Positions 51,315-61,549 of a stretch of DNA of 64,000 nt are shown here, piece by piece. The DNA comes from Klebsormidium nitens (Eukaryota; Plantae; Klebsormidiophyceae): positions 130,214 through 194,213 of the forward strand of contig DF237061.1 of assembly GCA_000708835.1 (NCBI GenBank), read 5' to 3'. Under the pieces are notes generated by a model, which did no database searches, was not told the origin of the DNA, and saw nothing but the letters and a program-made list of their open reading frames with translations. Every line of letters starts with the position of its first letter. Within the stretch, counting starts at the first letter, position 1. A program made the translations under genes and the position numbers.

Positions 51315-53786
51315 ATGTCAGCAAGCAAGATGGAGGCCATCTTGGCAGAAGCGTTGCCCAAGACGCCCCCCAGAAACAGAGTTTTTCCCATACTCATGCC
51401 TCCACGACCTCTGTCCATTGAGGTAGATGCTATCCTGGAGAAAGAAGCGGCTGTGCTGAGTCCCACTGGACCCAGGACGAGGTCTCCGTCGGTCACTCCC
51501 ATGTCAAGGCTGCCAAGCCCTACTGCTGAGGAGCTTGTGTTGAGGTGAGAACATTTGACTGTTTGAAGGATGCTGATCAACAAAGTGACCATTTGGTTCA
51601 TCGCTGACATGAAGGCAGTCCATTTTGGACCCAAGCAGGCTGGCTGGCAGTGGAAAATGGTGATCCTCTTCCTTGAACAGCTCAATTGTATCCAAATTGT
51701 CTGCAATAGTAAGACATCGTGCTCTGCTTGTATGAAACCAGAACCCATGCCAACATACTGCCATCTTCTTGTCGTCCCAATGGCGATCATGACTTTAGGA
51801 CAGCACAACAGGCTTAGTTTGACATTGCGAAGTTTTGGAAGGCTGCATAAGTTTACATAGACAATAAGACCTTTTGAAATCCACAGCATATTAAGAGAGA
51901 TGGACAAGTCTCTTTTTCGGCTTCAGTTGTTCAATGGGTGGAATGTATGTAGAGGTGCAAACGCATACCTCCATGCACTGACTGGACAAATCTTTCCTGT
52001 CTAAAACCTGTGCAAACGCACTGCTGACAGAAGACCTTTTTGTCCAGATTCTGTGCAAGCGAGTAATGCATATGTGGCCGGATTATCCTGCAGGGAGCAC
52101 ATGGATCTGCTTATGCTTGATGTTGCCAACAAGACACAGGAGGCTGGCCTAAATCTAGAAGATGCCTTTCCAGAGGACGCGGCCAAGGTGACCAGCAGTG
52201 AGTTGACAGCCTTTCTGCAAGAGGCGGGGTTGGATAACGCAGCAGAGACAGCGAATGAGATGGTAAGTTCTTTGTTGCGCAGGATTTGTGTGCCTGCAAA
52301 GAGCAGGATCTGAATAGGCTCTGCCTCAGCAGGGGTTAAATTGCATATTGTTTGTGATTTGGCAACCTTGACTCTGCGCGCACTTGTTTACTCACCAAAA
52401 TGGTAGTCTCAGCTTTAAGCACGTTCTCTGGGCGTTTCCACAAGATCGAGTGTTCCAAGAGCTCAAAGCCTTGTAATAACCAAGAATCTTCTGATGGATG
52501 CAGATTGCTGGCTGTAAGAAGTACGTCGGCGACAAGTCTTCAATGAGCCCCGCTGAGTTGAAGGTACACACACTGAAGCAGGCCCTCCGAGTAGCAGTTG
52601 CAAAGTAAGTGACCGTTCAAGAACGTTTCAACCTCTGTGTCTCAGATGTATCCATTGTTCCCTCTTTACACATCTACAGGAATCAACGCAGCTGAATCCA
52701 AGTTAAGTTGCATTGCAAGCCCTGCGTTGACCTGTCTCATTGGTATCAAGTTTTGAGTGCCCTTGACCTGTTTCTCTCTGCAGCGGTCCCTTCTGCACGA
52801 TGATCAGACCACCCGTGAGCCTTTGAAAGGTTGCTTGTTGAACGAACTGATCTTCAAGAAAGTCGCTAACACTACCCAACTCTTCCAAGTCTTTCAAAGG
52901 TCTAATCAAACCCTTGCTGTTCCTCTGCAGATCCCTCAGGCCCCGCAGCCGCAGCAGCTGTCACTCCAGCCCCTCCACCCTTCCCAACTCCCGCCTCACG
53001 ACCCCTCTGTCTACCCACGTCAGCGGCAGCCCCACACTCGCCCTGATCGAAGAAAACCCGCAGCCCCTCCAAGCGAGCCCCGCCAGCCCTGGCGGCAGCC
53101 GCAAGAAGCTCGGTCGCACCCGGTTTGGGCGGTCCCCAGATAGCGCCTGCCTGCAACGCAGCCCGGAGAGAGCGCCCCGGGCGGTCCCGATCGTCATTGA
53201 CGAGAACCAGCCGACGGCACCGGGCAGGAAAGAGCTGAGCCCGCCGCTGCGGGGGCCTGCGAGCGCCGACCCCTTCGCGTGCCAAAACGGCGTGCGCCTG
53301 CAAAAGGAAGCTTCGAAGGAGGCCGCTCTATTCGGCTCCCCCCCGAAGCAGCCCTTCCTGGAGCTGAGAGACCTCAACTCCAAACCCCTGCCAGGGTTTA
53401 TCAGCCAGGTGGCAATCACAGCGTCCGCCAAGCAGCACCTCGCGGCCGGGGCTGCGGGCTTTGGCAACGGGACGCAGCGCAAGCTCACGTTCGGCTCCGA
53501 GGGGATGAGCGAGGATCTGTTGGCCGGGTTTGCCCTACCGGGAAGCGCAAGGGGAAAGAAAAGGGCGAGTCGGAGAAAGTATCGGCAGGTGCCCGGGGAT
53601 GCCAGCGGGGAGACGGGGGAGGCTACCGGCGTGGGGTCGGCGGCCGGGGGGCCCAGCTCTGTAGCAACGGAGGGGGTTTCCAAGACCCCGCCTCTGTCTC
53701 CGCTCCATTTTCTGATGAAACTGACGAGCCTCTGGCAGCGAGACTCGCCGAAGGCAGCAGATCGGACCGCTGTTGAGGCACAATGA
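51315..53786 (+). CDS. Hypothetical Ser/Pro-rich, largely disordered protein
   Basis: Candidate exons 51315-51544, ~52048-52262, 52504-52604, 52931-53786. The last three splice in phase. The first junction does not, so an exon is missing or mis-set. No recognisable domain. Confidence 0.55.
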
Positions 53787-55811
53787 TTGAGGACTTTCCT
53801 ATTAAGCACAGGTTGAGGTGATACTGTATAAAAGAGTGAAGCTTGTTGACGTCAAACGGTAATGATCATTGCCGAGGGTAAGACCAGAGCTATAGAACCG
53901 TATGCTAGTGATGCCAGGTGTCATCGAAACTCTTTAATCTACACGCGCGCGTAGGCCTTGGTGATCTCGAAATAGTAGACTGGGTAACGTAGCGAACAAG
54001 CGGGTTAAGTGATGCGCGTGGGTAGAAAGTAAGATAAAAGCCGTTTGAAGTCGGGTCTCGTGCTTCTGGTAGCAGTCGTCGACTTCAACCGTCTATACGT
54101 TAGAAAGCTATTACACGAAGCACCCGTCGTGAGTATAGGACCGTTGTATGTCAAATTGAACGCGTGTGTATCCGTGCTTTCACTCTCTATATAGAGATCA
54201 GAAGCCACCTCATACTTTACGAAAGTACTTTTCTGAGGACCGCACAAGGAGCAGGTTCGAAGCAATTTGTCCTTCCGCAAGATCTAAAAACGACATATCG
54301 CATTTGATATCTACCGCCGATATTTCGTTTTTGAACAATTTGTCATGCATGAGCCTATCTAGTGTGCTTAACTATGGGCACGTATATTCTGACGGTATAC
54401 CGTCAGAACATGGATAGTCGCATGGAGACTCTCAGAACTCCAATGTAAATCAATCTTGAACTATAGCAAAAGGCGACTCCTACCTGAGCTCCACGGGGGA
54501 AAGTATGAATCTTGCTCGAAATCATCGACCACTGCAAATGGGTCCGACGCAAGCTTTCCTTGACTTCGGCGCAATCAAGTACTCATCTTCCTGTAATCAA
54601 CGTCCTGATCCGTGGCTCTATCACCAAATCCATACGTGTAATCAAAGTGAACGCCGTGGCAAAAGCATAAAACAGTATGGCCGCATTCCGTGTCTGGCCG
54701 CAATCCGTGCTCGTCAGGCTGATTGAGGCAGCCAAATGCTCCTAAACGAGGCTTTATCCAGATCACTGATGAAGGGCAGTGAACATTGAATGCTAGGAAA
54801 GAGTTCAGCCGTTGATATGGGCTGATGAAGATTGTGAAGGAGAGAGTTCGCGGGATCTGCATGAGCGTGAGCGAATCAAGACGACGAAGTTGACTTGTTC
54901 GGCACATCCAATGGCCGCAGGGGGCAGACTGCCCTCCTCTCCGAGTCTACCGACAAAGGCATCAAAGCATATGTAAAACATTTAATCGTCATCGGAGCGA
55001 AATGAGCCAAAAACAGACGTGAGGTGACATGTATTTGACGCCCAGAGCCATGAACGTAACACTCGATGTTGATTCAAAAATTTGGAAAGTCCCTTTCAGT
55101 CTGCGGACCTACCCTTGTGGATCGCTGATGGGCAAAAGATACGAGATTCCTGAAATCGCCCTTCGGGGCAACGTCGATCCTCTGTGACCCTCATGATCAG
55201 ACTCCTACCTAAAGTGGAAACAAATCATGCAAGAGGATCCCAAAGGAACACGCACCTATCTAGGTTCGTACGGGTTAGCTTTCGTGTCTGACTTCTCCGT
55301 TCGTCGAGAATGCTCAGGGCCAGACTCACCGGCGGATTGCTTCGGAAAGTTTCCCTGCATCTTCTGCCGGTTCTCCACACTCATTTGCAGCCAGTGTTTC
55401 CCTGCCAAAATCGTGCGTGGGTAGTAAGAGCGTAGTTGCAGATGAGAAGCGACTGTAGGTACGCAGATCAAAGTACAAGAGTCAGAAAGGATAACCTATG
55501 AGGCCACTGCATTTTGAAGCTTGGATGCGATCACCCCATCAATTGCAGAATGGTCGGCCGTCTCAGAGTCAGCTTTCGCCAACCAGCTCATCAGAACGCT
55601 CCGCTCCCTTCGAGTTTGACTTTCCTTCTGAATTGAACATGAAAGCGTGAAATCTTTTCACCCTCACATTGTTAACTTTGCGAAACTCCATCCATGTGTT
55701 TTATTGGAAGGTCCTACTTTATTGAACTCTGGTTCATTCATAAGCTTTGGAAGAGCGGAGGTCGCCGGTCGTCAAACCTCGACGGGTTTGGAAACGGGGA
55801 TTGCAAAAGTG

Positions 55812-55988
55812 TGGAGCCGGCTGGAGTCGAACCCGCATCTCTCACGGCAATCGCTCAGCTTTCTGATCGTCACTGTGCCTCGTTTTGGGCTCAAGCTGAC
55901 GTCTCAGTGCGTCCTGACGCCATTCAATCGCTCGGGCAACCGCGTTCAGCAGTCCGCCCTGGCGCTCTACCAATTGAGCTACGGCCCC
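55812..55988 (-). ncRNA. tRNA-Ala-like RNA 'A' (177 nt): acceptor, D and T arms intact, anticodon arm replaced by a ~115-nt structured insert
   Basis: GGGGCCG-TA-GCTC-AATTGGTA-GAGC-G-CCAG...GAGAGAT-GCGGG-TTCGACT-CCAGC-CGGCTCC-A, followed by CAC-TTTT. G3.U70 and A73 are present. No canonical anticodon loop. Confidence 0.8.
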
Positions 55989-56021
55989 ATTCCCGAACTT
56001 CTTATCTGTAAATCTGTTCGG

Positions 56022-56091
56022 TATATAAGTCTTCAGTCTAGAAAACAGCTTAATTGTGGGTATGTCTCGTCAACGGGCAGCTCGGCCGTCC
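56022..56091 (-). promoter_or_regulatory. Putative Pol III upstream promoter of RNA A
   Basis: GGACGGCCGAG (56091-56081), CCCACAATT (56060-56052) and TTATATA (56028-56022). All three have counterparts upstream of RNA B. Confidence 0.6.
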
Positions 56092-57458
56092 AACTCCGAA
56101 TCTACGGTGCAGGTGCTGCTTCAGGGCCTATTCGGACAGTTCGAGGTAGCAGAGTCAGCCGTTGAAACCTCTGCAAACAGTCAATGATTCGTTTGCGTCT
56201 ACTGATGAGAGGTTGGAGATAAGATGTTGATAATGAAAAGGAAGCGTTCCAGTCATGGTTCTTCCAGTGATACTCTACAAAACATACATTCGAATCACTA
56301 TGTTCCATGTCAGATATGTACGTCAAGGACCTTTGACTTGCGTAAGTCAAGGCTGACTGGTAAGTTCAGTTTCTTTGGCGATTGCGGGGCGATCAAAATA
56401 GTGAGCTTCGCATCTTTACTGCGTTTGCAGCTCTCCTCCCTTCTATAAATGTCAGCCTGCAGCCCCGGCCGTTACATACTCATAGCGCCCAGTAATGAGG
56501 GCGAGGGAAAAGTATGGCCCCCGAAAATCGACCACCCTCTTTTCCTTATTCAGCGCCTAGCAGCCTTGATCCGCTTGAGCGCTAAATCGACTATACCAAT
56601 GAAAGGAGTTGTCAGGATTTTTGGGCATGGTTGTGGTTGCATGAATGGATATGGCTCCACATGTCTGAACATCCAGTTAATTTCCTGATAAGTCGACTTG
56701 TGACGCCGGCTGTCTCCCAGTGGCAAATCAGAACGTAATGGAAAATCGATAATCTGGCGATCAAGGCCGAGGCCAAACTGTTGGACAGCTTTGGCGACGA
56801 GGCGAGGTCGTCCGGATCCAGGAGGCGCCTTCGACTGTTTTTTCGTTTGGCTATGCCAGTATGACCAAGGTTCATGACGTGTTTGAATTCTGTCACGTCT
56901 AACGCTCAAACAGCATTTCAACCTCGGGTAATGGAAAGATCCATTGTTTCTAACCCCTTACGTCGTAGTTGCAGAGACCCATAGTCAGGAGGGGCCCATG
57001 GCGGAATCGATGCATTGAAGCTGGAGTCTTGCGACCGCCAGGCGACGCCCCGTCTTTCTTCGCAATCATGTCAGCTTGGCTATGAACCAAAAGTTTTACT
57101 GCTGCTGAAGCAGAGGCACTGAAAGAGGACTGAATCGCTCAGAAAGACAGTGCGTCTTGATCAGGTGCGCCTTCACAAGCAACGCAGTGGCAGAATATCT
57201 CAAGTCTAAACAGATCACAAGATAGTCAAACGCCCCCGTAGGATACGAATTTTACCGTCCAACCATCTTTGACGCATCCCTTTTGACACCTGTCCAGCAT
57301 TATTCACTTGTCACATCATGTTGGTCTGTCTGCAGAACCAAGACGGACGTGTCGACGTGGCAAAAAAAGGCTACGTGACCGCAGTTCTACGCCATTGCTG
57401 GACAGGACAGCCGGTGCGGGCGCTTAATTGTGGTCTTCTCAGTTCGAGGGATTGAAAA

Positions 57459-59392
57459 ATGGCGTCAAGCATGTCAATGGCGCCGGCGGCGGGTCATTGG
57501 CTGGCAGCATCGCGTCGCGTCCTGAATCCTGAAGGTGGCGCGTCTGTGGGAAAGAGGGACGTCCACATTTTGCAGAGGTTAAATATCACTATGCCAAACG
57601 GGCCTTCAAATCTCCTTGGTAGAGAGCTTCAGCGCTCTCAGAATATGGCACTGCCCACTACAAGGTTAAAATTCCATTGCACTAAGAGGCCCTGTCACAT
57701 GGCCCGCCCTTTCTGTACTCTCGCATCAAGCAGAACCCCAGATGCATCCTGGCAGTGGCCACGTGGCGAAGCCTTTTTTCGGAGGCAGCCGTCCCGTCTA
57801 AGCAGATCAGACGCTCGCCCGTTGTACAAGACCATGCCAGCTTTGGGTCTGAACACGGGAGCGCCGCTCAGGAAGTGGGTGCAAAAAGATGCACCTGGCT
57901 ATGCTTTTGGCTTCACAGCAACGCCAAGTGACCTCGCGAGGGCGCAGCCAAGCGCCGCGGAAGCTAAGGCAGGGAGTATCGAACGGCTGGAAAAGAGGGG
58001 GAAGGGGAAAATGAAAGCAGGGGGAGCGAGCCCCGGGGAACCTAGCTCAGGAGAGCAGAGCCCGGAGGAGCCCACCGAGCCGCCCCTGGGCCCCGACGTC
58101 TCGCTCAGACTTTCCGCGGAGACCGTGACCCTGGCTGCTTTCGCTCTCAGTTTGTTCGCCCTTTCGTGCTCTGTCCTCCCGCCTCTGAGGATCGCAAACT
58201 TGCCCCTTCCTGACGCCGTTCTTCTCCACATATTGCTGACGTCAAACGCCATCTACCTCGAATGGGCGGCGCTGCAATCATTCAAGAACGGCACAGCTAC
58301 GACGGGCAGGCTGCTGACGCGGCACCCGGGGCTTCCCCCCGACTGGCACATGTTATCCGACCCCAAAACTGTTGGAGATAAGTACTTCAACTTATCCACC
58401 TAGGCCATCCCTGCGCAGGGATGGCCTAGGTGGATAAGTTGAAGTACTTATCTCCAACAAAAACAAACCGGGCTTGCTTCTACAACTCGGTCAGCAAAGT
58501 CGTTCAGTGGGATCCCCCGCCCTCGCTCCTACTTACTACCTCAAGGGCCTCCCCCGGGCTGTTTGGAACTCTGACCCTGTTCTTCGACGGTTTCTTTCAG
58601 CAACTCGGGGGACTCCTGCAGCCAGTCGTGACGATCGGGCTGTACTTGAGCACAGTCGTAACGGTCTACTGCTTCTCGCGCGGTCTCTACGGGGGCCAAC
58701 TAGGTGTGGGGACGAGTTTCTTCCTCTCGGCGGCTTTCCTCACGCTTCCACAGCCGCTGCTCCTCCTAGTTATTGCGCTCAGTTCACGGCCTTCCTTCCT
58801 GAACGGAATTGTTGCCGCTCGGTGCGAGTCAGCTCTCTGCGTCACGCTCCTCATCAGTGTTCTCCCCGGGCTCTTCTCCACCCTCGGAACAATCCACCGG
58901 GCTGCCGAAGCGCGCCTGCCTCGTTGCCGTCTTCCCTGGAACTGCGAGTGTTTCCTGCGACTCCTGGTCGCTCTTTGCCCCGCCCTCAGTTCGAGGCTCC
59001 ACCCCTACGCCCTCAGACTGGACTACGCCCGGGTGGCGCTTCTCCCGCTACCCTATAGTGTTCCCCTTCCGGTGCCCGTACCACGCTGGGAACTCTTGAA
59101 GTCTTCCTGGAGAGCGCTTTTGTACGCCGCGCCGATGGTACTCCCCCTGGCGCGGCTGCTCGCGGCCGCGCCGATGGGTTTACCAGCGCGCACATTTTGC
59201 ACCCTGGTTGTTTGGTCGAGGCCGGTGCAGATCAGTGCGTGTGTCTCGGCCGTCACTTTTCTGCTCGGGCGACAGAGGGCGGCGTACGAGGTCGCTTTGG
59301 AGGAGAAGAACAAGGAAGAAGATGCGGAGGTCGAGACCTTGGACAAAATGCTGCTTCAGGAGTTTGACAGCAGGATGCTGGATCACACATAA
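57459..59392 (+). pseudogene. Intronless multi-TM protein with a central WW domain; reading frame broken by a 95-bp insertion
   Basis: ORFs 57459-58403 and 58430-59392 join into one 612-codon frame when the palindrome plus one TSD copy is removed. This restores the WW motif LPPDWHMLSDPKTNRACFYNSVSKVVQWDPP. Confidence 0.8.
58370..58459. mobile_element. Perfect 90-bp palindromic mini-element, TG...CA ends, 5-bp TSD
   Basis: TGTTGGAGATAAGTACTTCAACTTATCCACCTAGGCCATCCCTGC followed immediately by its exact reverse complement. AAAAC lies at 58365-58369 and 58460-58464. Confidence 0.95.
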
Positions 59393-60506
59393 CTTGCTCT
59401 TTTTGATAAGATCTGGCGATAAGAAATCAGAGAACGAGTGAGAATCCCAGAGCACTGCCGAATTCAGCCGGATCTATAGAGTAGACGTGCCTTATGCTGT
59501 CCAGTGACTGGAACAATTGACCCAAGAAGTGATGTAAGAGGACCTCAGTCTCGCACGTTTTTCGTGTCGACGTCAGATCCACAAATTCGTCTAGCTTTGG
59601 ACTTTCTTCATGAAATTTTATCGGCAGTGTCGGAACGGGCTCGGTTCATTATTTATGCCCAATGACATGGCTTAATTGATTGTGGGTCACATTTGAGCAG
59701 CCAGATCCGGACGCTTTAACGTGTCCATATGATCTCGGTACGTCATTGACGTCATTTGCGGACCGTTCACAGTACTAATCGCGACCACATGAGTACGAAC
59801 AAAAAAAAAGCTGAAGACACTGGAAATGAGTTGCTATTGGACGAGCAAAGCTTGGCGCCGGAGGTTGCAGTGAGGTTGTTAAATGAGAACTTAGAGGCGA
59901 CAGGGAAAGGCGGAGTCAACAGGCCACTTGAGCGCAGATTGCAATGATATCTGCATAGCCCCTATTTCCTGCTTCACATCTTCAATAAGTAGATTTGTTT
60001 GCATGAAGCGTACGCGTCGGGTTTTCATATAATGATTCGCAAAAAAGATGGCTTCGTAGCACACAGGCTGAGTAGTTGGTATGCCTGCAATCCTTCAGGA
60101 GCGGCGGCTATTGCGACGAGCATGGACAAAATACCTCGGGAGTCCTTGCATACGTCTTAAGCAGAAGCATCAATTTTTCCCGGCAGTCCAATTTGTATTA
60201 CACCGCTCATGAGTATACGTACTTCTTATGACACGTCAAGAAGATGATCAACATGAATCTCTCAACAATCTGAACGTCTACGGATGTCTTGCTCTTCCGA
60301 GAGTTCAACATGGGATTTCGACGTACGCTGTAAGCCGCCTTTGCGCCACGACAAGATGACAGAGCGGCGGTTCTACAAGACGGAGCCTCTGGCTCGGCGG
60401 GACTCGGTGGCACGTCGCGGGCACTTTACGCAACGTACAGTTTCATTTTGAACCCGTATAACTGGTTAGATGTTAGCAGAACACCTCGACCGTCGAGTGT
60501 GACATC

Positions 60507-60584
60507 GGACGGTCGAGACTCGAAGTCCGACGCAGGCGACGTTCGCCCACAAATTTCGACGCCCGCCGATTGACGGTTTATTTA
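60507..60584 (+). promoter_or_regulatory. Putative Pol III upstream promoter of RNA B
   Basis: GGACGGTCGAG (60507-60517), CCCACAAATT (60546-60555) and TTTATTTA (60577-60584). Confidence 0.6.
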
Positions 60585-60611
60585 CCGGCCAACCTCTGTC
60601 TGGACAGTTCA

Positions 60612-60920
60612 GGGGCTGCAGCTCAAATGGCAGAGCGCCAGAATGACCGGCATTGCCAAAGTGGCATGCATGTTAACGGTCTTCGCCTCAATCTGAGCTC
60701 GCCCCGCGAGGATTGCGTGTGTGCGAGCTACGGGGGTTGCCGTTGCGGTCTCGTTTCGTAAGTTCGGGCGAGACCGGCCTGGTGAACCGGGGCCGCGGAT
60801 ACCTGCCTTGCCGGGCCCGGGGAGTCTCTCGGGATAGTCCAGGGGGCTTCGCAGGGCGGTCAAAGAAACCGGGTTTGCTAGGTTGGCTGAGAGATGCGGG
60901 TTCAAGTCCCGCCAGCTCCA
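60612..60920 (+). ncRNA. tRNA-Ala-like RNA 'B' (309 nt): acceptor, D and T arms intact, anticodon arm replaced by a ~250-nt multi-hairpin insert
   Basis: GGGGCTG-CA-GCTC-AAATGGCA-GAGC-G-CCAG...GAGAGAT-GCGGG-TTCAAGT-CCCGC-CAGCTCC-A, followed by AAC-TTTTT. G3.U70 and A73 are present and the T stem is perfect. Confidence 0.85.
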
Positions 60921-61549
60921 AACTTTTTCATACCGACAGCTTGGTACAGTGGTCGTTTTGCAACACTCGCCGTTTTCGCAGTTCCTGCGGCCATGCATGC
61001 TTTTCATAGCAGAGATGCATCTATAGTGTTTACCATGGCCTGGCCAGATGCCGTGCAAGCGATGCAAGACAATGTATGTACGGTCAATAAAAGGTGAGCT
61101 ACTTGAATTCCAACCTGCTTGAAGCCCACTCATTGCACCGCCCTGGAGTAAAGTGGTGCGGCATGCCAGCTCTAGAGTCGCTAGCTGGCCATGGCGCATA
61201 CAATGCGAAGCTTTGATTCAGCAAGGATCAGGACAAAACGTTCGCATCACTGGTCATTCGCAAACGAGTTCTTACAGGCTTTCGATACGATGTGCAATAA
61301 GAAGAAGGCTATCTAGCGCACCCGGTGTACGAGTACGGTCATGTGCCCCGAACCAAATATCATGTGGCGAAAGGACAAGAAGCTATAGAGCCATACCAAG
61401 AGCCCCAACCATTGACGGGGTAGATGCCAAACAGGATCAATGGTGAAATGAAGCAACACCATCTCAAATGGACTTCATGAGTATGTTACAAGTGTAGCCG
61501 GGTCGTTTCTAGTTGTCAATCGAAGAATCTGCTTGTGAGACAATTCCTC

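Follow-up and report, generated by a model that had tools for sequence, protein, structure and literature searches.

What kind of RNA is encoded by a gene whose two ends read as the halves of a tRNA-Ala and in which the place of the anticodon arm is taken by more than a hundred nucleotides of other sequence? Two such genes, here called c1 and c2, lie in a stretch of 64,000 nt that forms the end of scaffold DF237061.1 of Klebsormidium nitens (assembly GCA_000708835.1, positions 130,214 to 194,213 of the forward strand); this whole stretch is referred to as the window, and positions are given in its numbering. The original prediction, made from the letters of the window, had taken the pair for a selected family of anticodon-less, transfer-messenger RNA (tmRNA)-like RNAs that RNA polymerase III (Pol III) transcribes in the nucleus. 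Following comparison with relatives, we consider it probable that c1 and c2 represent the short and the long type within a family of genes for small non-coding RNAs that is conserved in Klebsormidium-type streptophyte algae and in which tRNA-Ala shells act as scaffolds for a structured cargo.

Direct reading of the sequence places the two genes where the original prediction had put them, divergently transcribed and with 4.6 kb between their 5' ends. Their parts are as follows, o1 and o2 being orthologs in a relative described below.

55812..55988, minus strand: short-type gene c1, 177 nt, tRNA-Ala shell plus 113-nt cargo (sequence reading; Rfam tRNA match; 85% identical to ortholog o1)
55959..55988, minus strand: c1 5' shell, with GGGGCCG as the acceptor 5' strand, U8 A9, D arm GCTC-AATTGGTA-GAGC and GCCAG (same in ortholog o1)
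55846..55958, minus strand: c1 cargo replacing the anticodon arm (77% identical to o1)
55812..55845, minus strand: c1 3' shell, GTGAGAGAT, T arm GCGGG-TTCGACT-CCAGC, acceptor 3' strand CGGCTCC and A73
60612..60920, plus strand: long-type gene c2, 309 nt, tRNA-Ala shell plus 245-nt cargo (ortholog at L133 9988-10297, a sharply bounded island)
60612..60641, plus strand: c2 5' shell, with GGGGCTG, C8 A9, D arm GCTC-AAATGGCA-GAGC and GCCAG
60642..60886, plus strand: c2 cargo, multi-branched, 63% G+C (from folds; 90% identical to o2)
60776..60884, plus strand: arm H4 of the c2 cargo, an outer stem, an internal loop and a three-way junction with one small and one long hairpin
60887..60920, plus strand: c2 3' shell, CTGAGAGAT, T arm GCGGG-TTCAAGT-CCCGC, CAGCTCC and A73

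The acceptor stems, GGGGCCG/CGGCTCC in c1 and GGGGCTG/CAGCTCC in c2, share the pairs G1-C72, G2-C71, G3:U70 and G4-C69 as well as the discriminator A73, and differ by a compensatory change at pair 6:67, which is C-G in c1 and U-A in c2. Both D arms pair GCTC with GAGC around an 8-nt loop holding G18 G19 and are followed by GCCAG, and the 3' parts conform to a common pattern of (G/C)TGAGAGAT, T arm GCGGG-TTCRANT-CCNGC, CRGCTCC and A. Taking GAGAT as a 5-nt variable loop places A15/U48 and G46 correctly, so that the tRNA shell proposed earlier, with its compensatory 6:67 pair, G3.U70, A73, A15/U48 and G46, is borne out by the letters. The shells of c1 and c2 match each other by blastn (E 5e-8 and 2e-6), and no similarity was detected by blastn between their inserts, again as proposed. 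The Rfam tRNA model RF00005 reports c1 at 35.2 bits (threshold 29), spanning a 120-nt insertion, and likewise reports two of the relatives introduced below, o1 at 43.9 and m3 at 30.0 bits, with c2 and the other long types unreported as tRNA. Forcing the three shell helices costs 3.0 and 1.9 kcal/mol above the free minimum-energy fold for c1 and c2, respectively, and in the relatives o1, o2, m1 and m2 the acceptor, D and T helices are present already in the unconstrained minimum-energy folds. As an additional observation, both genes repeat the last 4-5 nt of their own acceptor 5' strand just 5' of (U)GAGAGAU (GCCG in c1, 55846-55851; GGCUG in c2, 60881-60887); the repeat covaries with pair 6:67, and the 3' part could thereby fold into an alternative minihelix, which is what the weak matches to tmRNA and mascRNA models reflect.

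Relatives were located via the last exon of the upstream neighbour gene (window 52914-53786). An ortholog of this exon that is 81% identical lies on a 45.8-kb Logan contig of SRR23617307 (locus L133), and one that is 50% identical lies on a 45.6-kb contig from the Joint Genome Institute, 3300060284 (locus L134), which also holds the DUF6691 gene that lies upstream in K. nitens. A third ortholog, also 50% identical, was found on short contigs of three Logan assemblies (L135-L137), and no shells were found on these short contigs. In both L133 and L134, copies of the family sit downstream of the neighbour gene.

L133 5063-5242, minus strand: o1, ortholog of c1, 180 nt
L133 9988-10297, plus strand: o2, ortholog of c2, 310 nt
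L134 13522-13806, plus strand: m1, 285 nt
L134 15625-15900, minus strand: m2, 276 nt
L134 18370-18548, plus strand: m3, 179 nt

The spacing and divergent orientation of o1 and o2 agree with those of c1 and c2. Global alignment gave 91.6% identity over 310 nt for c2/o2 (cargo 90.3%, shell 95.8%) and 85% for c1/o1 (cargo 76.9%, shell 97.2%), compared with 74-78% (blastn) for the coding exons nearby, and the remaining intergenic DNA of K. nitens and L133 yielded almost no blastn alignment outside the RNA elements. The c2/o2 BLAST match (89.9%) runs from 1 nt before G1 to 22 nt past A73, and the c1/o1 blastn match (76%) includes about 170 nt of upstream sequence. In the more distant L134, the shells are 78-88% identical to those of K. 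nitens. Across all seven copies the UGAGAGAU block is invariant (7/7), the T arm and positions 9-29 are nearly so, and none of the six intact copies departs from G3.U70 or A73. Pairs read directly from the 7-copy alignment show that the shell stems covary, with C-G or U-A at 6:67 and C-G, or U-A in m3, at 50:64. Between o1 and o2, at L133 7878-7901 on the minus strand, lies a decayed 5'-shell-like fragment, GTAGTTCAGGTGGTAAAGCGTCAG, without a recognisable 3' half.

Upstream and downstream of the two genes, the following motifs were found.

56054..56060, minus strand: CCCACAA, similar to an upstream sequence element (USE), 66-72 nt upstream of c1
56022..56027, minus strand: TATA-like box TATATA of c1, 26 nt past the USE and 34-39 nt upstream of G1
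55805..55808, minus strand: T4 run, Pol III terminator-like, 3 nt past A73 of c1
60546..60552, plus strand: USE-like CCCACAA, 60-66 nt upstream of c2
60577..60584, plus strand: TATA-like box TTTATTTA of c2, 24 nt past the USE and 28-35 nt upstream of G1
60924..60928, plus strand: T5 run, Pol III terminator-like, 3 nt past A73 of c2 (the ortholog has the same AAC-TTTTT)

Alignment of the flanks revealed that CCCACAA is invariant at -60 to -76 in 7/7 copies and that all copies carry an A/T-rich TATA-like box 24-28 nt past it, at about -27 to -43. A run of four or five T follows within 20 nt downstream of the discriminator in 6/7 copies, and no internal T4 run occurs in any of the seven. The land-plant USE consensus is TCCCACATCG. 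For two green algae, the consensus sequences are given as ACCCAYAW and ACCCATAA (PMC8287931, Table 1), and the plant small nuclear RNA (snRNA)-type, or type-3, promoter consists of a USE and a TATA box, whose spacing in Arabidopsis is 23-24 bp for Pol III and 32-34 bp for Pol II; such promoters drive U6, U3, 7SL, MRP and telomerase RNA (PMC8287931). Judged by these motifs, the flanks point to an external (type 3) Pol III promoter, the USE label being taken from consensus sequences of other green lineages, which may not be that of K. nitens itself. The predicted nuclear Pol III setting is thus retained, and the simple tRNA-type promoter that came with it is replaced by the CCCACAA and TATA-like box upstream of every copy. 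Under an external promoter, the near-invariance of the acceptor stem, G3.U70, A73 and UGAGAGAU would not be attributable to internal promoter boxes, which argues for a role in the RNA. A further CCCACAA at 59680-59686 on the minus strand, with ATAAATAA 24 nt on, faces the 3' end of KFL_001120250, the gene between c1 and c2; it is not conserved in L133 and is probably a chance occurrence.

A tRNA-like gene with an insert is first of all suspected of being a tRNA gene with an intron, i.e. of yielding a decoding tRNA-Ala once one or more non-canonical introns are removed. In favour of this explanation, the Rfam tRNA model matches c1, o1 and m3 at 30-44 bits, and conserved exons with fast-evolving introns are the usual pattern of tRNA genes. 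At default settings, ARAGORN detected neither a tRNA nor a tmRNA in c1 and c2. We deleted every possible single intron in turn and reran ARAGORN, also with long introns and lowered thresholds. Many of the artificially spliced variants were accepted as weak readings (Ser-GGA, Val-GAC, Leu, Ile and others); these anticodons disagree with one another, none of the readings was common to c1 and c2, and no Ala anticodon with U33 and R37 was among the single-intron-deletion readings of the two genes. A search confined to strict 3-4-3 bulge-helix-bulge motifs gave no match in c1, and in c2 no match that would take out the insert. At the position of the anticodon arm, c1 offers a weak local hairpin, CCAGG-GCGGACT-GCTGA, of 3 bp only and with C33, and c2 can be forced into a 37/38-type reading with the loop AUGACCG, a 232-nt insertion and the closing stem CCAGA/GTTGG; neither is common to c1 and c2 or kept in the relatives in the 7-way alignment.

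The same alignment limits conservation to positions 1-29 and the last 33-34 nt, about 63 nt in total, and contains no conserved block able to supply positions 30-40 or an anticodon stem-loop. A canonical anticodon arm, understood as a 5-bp stem and a 7-nt loop with U33 and a purine at 37, kept among copies, was thus not found. From this conservation pattern, together with the lack of a conserved anticodon block, we reject both a spliceable tRNA and a pseudogene or short interspersed nuclear element (SINE) as the nature of c1 and c2. An intron-bearing tRNA gene is also hard to reconcile with the 'intron' of c2, which is 90% conserved while nearby neutral DNA is unalignable, and with the USE, which ordinary tRNA genes do not carry, so that this explanation strikes us as barely credible.

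Dead tRNA-Ala pseudogenes or SINE-like retroposons with junk inserts, whose shells resemble each other through recent origin or gene conversion, are just as improbable. This possibility drew on the defects of individual copies (C8, G51.A63, the decayed m3), on there being only two copies before relatives were found, and on the 5' junction GAGCGCCAG, which is common in ordinary tRNAs. A metagenome scan with the 5' shell motif indeed returned ordinary tRNAs (Ala, His, Gly, Val and others), meaning that GAGCGCCAG is merely the D stem plus the 5' strand of a common CCAGC/GCTGG-type anticodon stem. Retroposition and decay are, however, at odds with syntenic orthologs in three genomes, with a conservation of the elements that exceeds that of coding exons, with promoter and terminator motifs that are kept, and with orthologs that lack the K. 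nitens defects. Moreover, the tRNA halves flank the body instead of forming a 5' head alone, the copies end in neither a poly(A) nor a repeat tail, no target-site duplication is convincing, and no further copies were found in about 85 kb of other Klebsormidium-type loci. The earlier exclusion of SINEs, pseudogenes and spliceable tRNAs is therefore upheld by the comparison with relatives, as is the proposal of a selected family of anticodon-less RNAs, which now rests on syntenic orthologs in two relatives, an island of conservation, the missing anticodon block and the structure-preserving changes in the cargo described below.

The main rival is of a different kind: the shell may be a mere cassette for expression and processing, from which the cargo is excised as a free linear or circular RNA, leaving the joined shell as a by-product; parallels would be tRNA intronic circular RNAs, small nucleolar RNAs borne by archaeal introns and plant precursors that combine a tRNA with a small nucleolar RNA. 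The cargo does occupy the position of a tRNA intron, a 37/38-type insertion with CCAGA/GTTGG as its closing stem is one possible drawing of c2, and the cargo of c2/o2 is conserved as much as its shell. According to a 2026 review, about 34% of K. nitens tRNA genes bear canonical introns, and in most streptophyte algae canonical introns alone occur (PMC13578239). Against the cassette, there is neither a strict bulge-helix-bulge that removes the insert in c1 or c2 nor a junction reading that is common to the two or conserved. Under an external promoter, an acceptor stem, G3.U70, A73 and UGAGAGAU that are invariant across species would furthermore be needless in a discarded shell. We therefore regard the cassette as unlikely, and favour RNAs in which the tRNA-Ala shell and its cargo stay together.

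The inserts themselves fold into multi-branched structures in c1 and c2, and the single long helix with an insert that had been envisaged is thereby replaced. RNAalifold consensus folds comprise 103 pairs for c2 and o2, with 7 one-sided wobble-compatible changes and none broken, and 51 pairs for c1 and o1, with 3 double compensatory changes and none broken. Since a consensus fold is biased towards compatible pairs, we also tested the fold predicted from the K. nitens sequence by itself, by comparing the pairs broken by the real substitutions with those broken by the same substitutions placed randomly. For c1/o1, 4 pairs were broken versus 9.0 expected at random (P=0.009), and for c2/o2, 8 versus 11.7 (P=0.056), so that the folds suggest a structure-preserving signal that is real but modest. 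A covariance model of H4, built from c2/o2, finds an equivalent arm in m1 (L134 13664-13756) with the same three-way junction, in which 20 of the 39 pairs are unchanged, 6 show one-sided and 7 compensatory changes, 2 are broken and the rest are gapped.

At E up to 10, none of the cargos, whether from the window or from the orthologs, has a match to an Rfam family. The products known for type-3 promoters, U6, U3, 7SL and MRP, accordingly gave no Rfam match even at E up to 10. For telomerase RNA, no permutation of the template for the Klebsormidium telomere repeat, CCCTAAAA or CCTAAAA (PMC8287931), is present in c1, c2, o1, o2, m1 or m3, and a single 7-mer occurs in m2. By eye, parts of the c2 cargo resemble helix 8 of the signal recognition particle RNA (GGUGAACC..., GCAGG...GUCAAA), the CR-I motif of RNase P/MRP (GGAUAGUCC) and the Ro-binding helix of Y RNAs (CUGGU/GCUAG); all three were dismissed, being without Rfam support and not kept in m1/m2, and the Y RNA and YrlA models RF00019 and RF02553 had no match in the window region. 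Nucleotides 250-268 of c2 (window 60861-60879) resemble, over 18-19 nt, a stretch coding for the WW domain in the neighbouring gene family; with a score of 31 against a shuffled 95th percentile of 29, this likeness is probably due to chance.

With the cargo in view, the comparison with bacterial and organellar tmRNA (SsrA) can be drawn more precisely. In both, the two ends form an alanine-identity acceptor with G3:U70 and a T arm, and a large structured domain stands at the place of the anticodon arm; together with the invariance of G3.U70 and A73 in the six intact copies, this topology could speak for a nuclear counterpart of tmRNA, i.e. an RNA charged with alanine that gains entry to stalled ribosomes and appends a cargo-encoded tag. 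The Klebsormidium RNAs, however, possess a complete D arm with G18 G19, and their genes are nuclear, with a USE/TATA promoter and an oligo-T terminator. The tmRNA models reach 22-26 bits against a threshold of 47, in matches confined to the 3' minihelix, ARAGORN reports neither a tmRNA nor a tag, and no pseudoknot-plus-tag reading frame was detected. The differences between orthologs follow RNA pairing, with no conserved reading frame seen, and the cargos of the short and long types are unrelated. The tmRNA likeness of the original prediction is thus retained as one of topology, and a tag-adding nuclear tmRNA appears very improbable.

Several points weigh against the proposed family of tRNA-scaffolded RNAs and have to be set beside the evidence above. 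The evidence base consists of three genomes and seven copies, and the shells are not free of blemishes: c2 has C8 where U8 is near-universal elsewhere, the T stem of c1 contains a G51.A63 mismatch, and the acceptor stem of m3 is decayed (GAAACUG), with U73. As o2 has U8 and the T stem of o1 is perfect, the first two defects are private to K. nitens, and the T stem of m3 is compensatory (GUGGG/CCCAC). Among the flanking motifs, o1 is without a T4 run, having only TTTCTCTT, and chance occurrences of CCCACAA with an A/T-rich hexamer exist elsewhere in the window. Between distant copies the cargo changes rapidly, with m1 and m2 having little in common, and its covariation is limited, c2/o2 showing no double changes. 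The z-scores of the cargo folds are modest (-1.7 and -1.8), and the match of the H4 model to m1 has 17.7 bits, an E of about 0.1 in 198 kb and an alignment that is fitted to the model.

On balance, the most likely course of events would be that Pol III transcribes each gene from its external USE and TATA promoter with a short leader and trailer, and that the two transcript ends together form a tRNA-Ala acceptor stem, D arm and T arm, the anticodon arm giving way to a G+C-rich structured cargo of 113 or 245 nt. The shell would then recruit RNase P or PRORP, RNase Z and the CCA-adding enzyme, whereby both ends would be defined and capped, and as a tRNA elbow it may lend the RNA stability and serve in its transport. 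The cargo would be the specific working part, and a protein-binding scaffold of a ribonucleoprotein is, as a working guess, its most likely role.

The shell may also allow the RNA to be charged by alanyl-tRNA synthetase (AlaRS). In a preprint (bioRxiv 10.1101/2022.11.23.517754), this enzyme is described as not reading the anticodon, and as the full acceptor identity set does not vary among the six intact copies even though the stem evolves at 6:67, alanylation of c1/c2-type RNAs is plausible from the sequence. That the RNAs are in fact charged with alanine by AlaRS, and that being charged, or bound by AlaRS, forms part of their mode of action, is a more demanding proposal to which we give only a small chance. 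The import of plant cytosolic tRNA-Ala into mitochondria depends on U70. A charged state could, for example, act as a passport that carries the cargo RNA to where cytosolic tRNA-Ala goes, be it an organelle or a ribosome-associated pathway. If this were true, the family would represent a eukaryotic, nuclear-encoded class of aminoacylated non-decoding RNAs.

The gene between c1 and c2, KFL_001120250 (window 57459-59392), encodes a WW/transmembrane protein. It has no counterpart between the orthologous RNA genes in L133 (5243-9987) or in L134, with similar spacing (4.6 versus 4.7 kb), and no shells or tRNAs were found at its paralog loci L002, L003, L124 and L125, so that the RNA family is not linked to this gene. 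Its WW-domain coding part is interrupted at 58370-58459 by a perfect 90-nt palindrome: a paralog reads ...DPKTNRVYFCNSV..., KFL_001120250 reads DPKT, the palindrome and then TKTNRACFYNSV, and the WW domain is passed over in the annotated protein model. The window and the related loci contain no second copy of this palindrome. Elsewhere in the window, a run of N at about 48.5-49.3 kb, an assembly gap, accounts for an apparent dip in G+C and for long X-filled open reading frames (ORFs), and the spurious ORFs across c1 and c2 found no relatives when used as queries to protein databases.

The wider searches also returned several unusual tRNA-like genes. A bacterial-looking soil-metagenome contig with a VapB-like ORF of the Rv0623 family (L037 49-166, minus strand) carries a tRNA-like gene with G3:U70, A73 and an encoded CCA; where the anticodon arm would be, a 58-nt insert forms a 7-bp stem that opens into two hairpins. 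At minimum energy this gene folds into a clean cloverleaf shell, and in its variable loop and T arm, GAGATGCGGGTTCAAGTCCCG, it does not differ from c2. A search of bacterial and archaeal reference genomes for similar shells with 45-75 nt inserts gave 7 chance matches, none tRNA-like. Two metagenomic tRNA-Phe(GAA) genes (L096 2255-2395 and L103 4924-5065) contain two intervening sequences each, one following the anticodon and another, about 55 nt long, within the T arm. L047 7064-7360 holds two tandem YrlA matches that, at 37 and 30 bits, fall short of the threshold of 69; one of them had been picked up by the 5' shell pattern through its tRNA-like D-arm motif.

Several known systems share parts of this architecture. 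In the engineered 'tRNA scaffold' for recombinant RNA, an RNA is put in place of the anticodon stem-loop, and the tRNA body gives processing and protection. The Klebsormidium RNAs have the same arrangement of a cargo replacing the anticodon arm in a tRNA body, and differ in being natural, conserved and of alanine type, with a shell that would stabilise its cargo likewise. An archaeal tRNA-Trp intron hosts a small nucleolar RNA and thus also embeds a structured RNA in a tRNA-shaped transcript, the host being a real tRNA. In metazoan tRNA intronic circular RNAs (tricRNAs), a long structured RNA lies at or near the anticodon loop of a tRNA-shaped transcript, but each host is a genuine tRNA with an anticodon arm and splice motifs that are conserved (PMC6614914), neither of which was found in c1 and c2.

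YrlA, too, is a non-decoding RNA with a tRNA-like module joined to a functional helix at the position of the anticodon stem, but it is permuted: its ends lie in the Ro60-binding stem and its acceptor stem is closed, and it is thus not chargeable (PMC4201824; bioRxiv 10.1101/312249). No YrlA or Y RNA match exists in c1 and c2, and the 4-bp likeness of c2 to the Ro-binding helix is not kept in m1/m2. Arabidopsis GUT15, which is possibly aminoacylated (PMC6152437), and vertebrate mascRNA are eukaryotic tRNA-like RNAs without a canonical anticodon stem-loop that are processed by the tRNA machinery and receive CCA; they are, however, tRNA-sized pieces of Pol II transcripts without cargo, whereas the Klebsormidium RNAs would be 177-310 nt long and have their own promoter. 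With plant type-3 Pol III genes (PMC8287931), c1 and c2 share the upstream USE-like motif, the TATA-like box about 24-28 bp on and the oligo-T terminator, while their products match none of these in Rfam and their tRNA shell contains intact internal A and B boxes.

In the literature, we found no description of conserved autonomous nuclear genes that wrap a large cargo in a complete alanine-type tRNA body, in Klebsormidium or elsewhere, and the c1/c2 family looks like an undescribed class of tRNA-scaffolded RNA. As both tRNA gene finders and Rfam overlook such genes, similar families may hide in other algal and plant genomes. Non-decoding tRNA-shaped RNAs are already known from bacteria (tmRNA, YrlA), from viruses and as fragments of Pol II transcripts. 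If expressed as predicted, the Klebsormidium family would be a natural counterpart of the engineered tRNA scaffold and a new class of product for the plant snRNA-type promoter, and it would offer a direct test of whether eukaryotic cells aminoacylate RNAs that are unable to decode.

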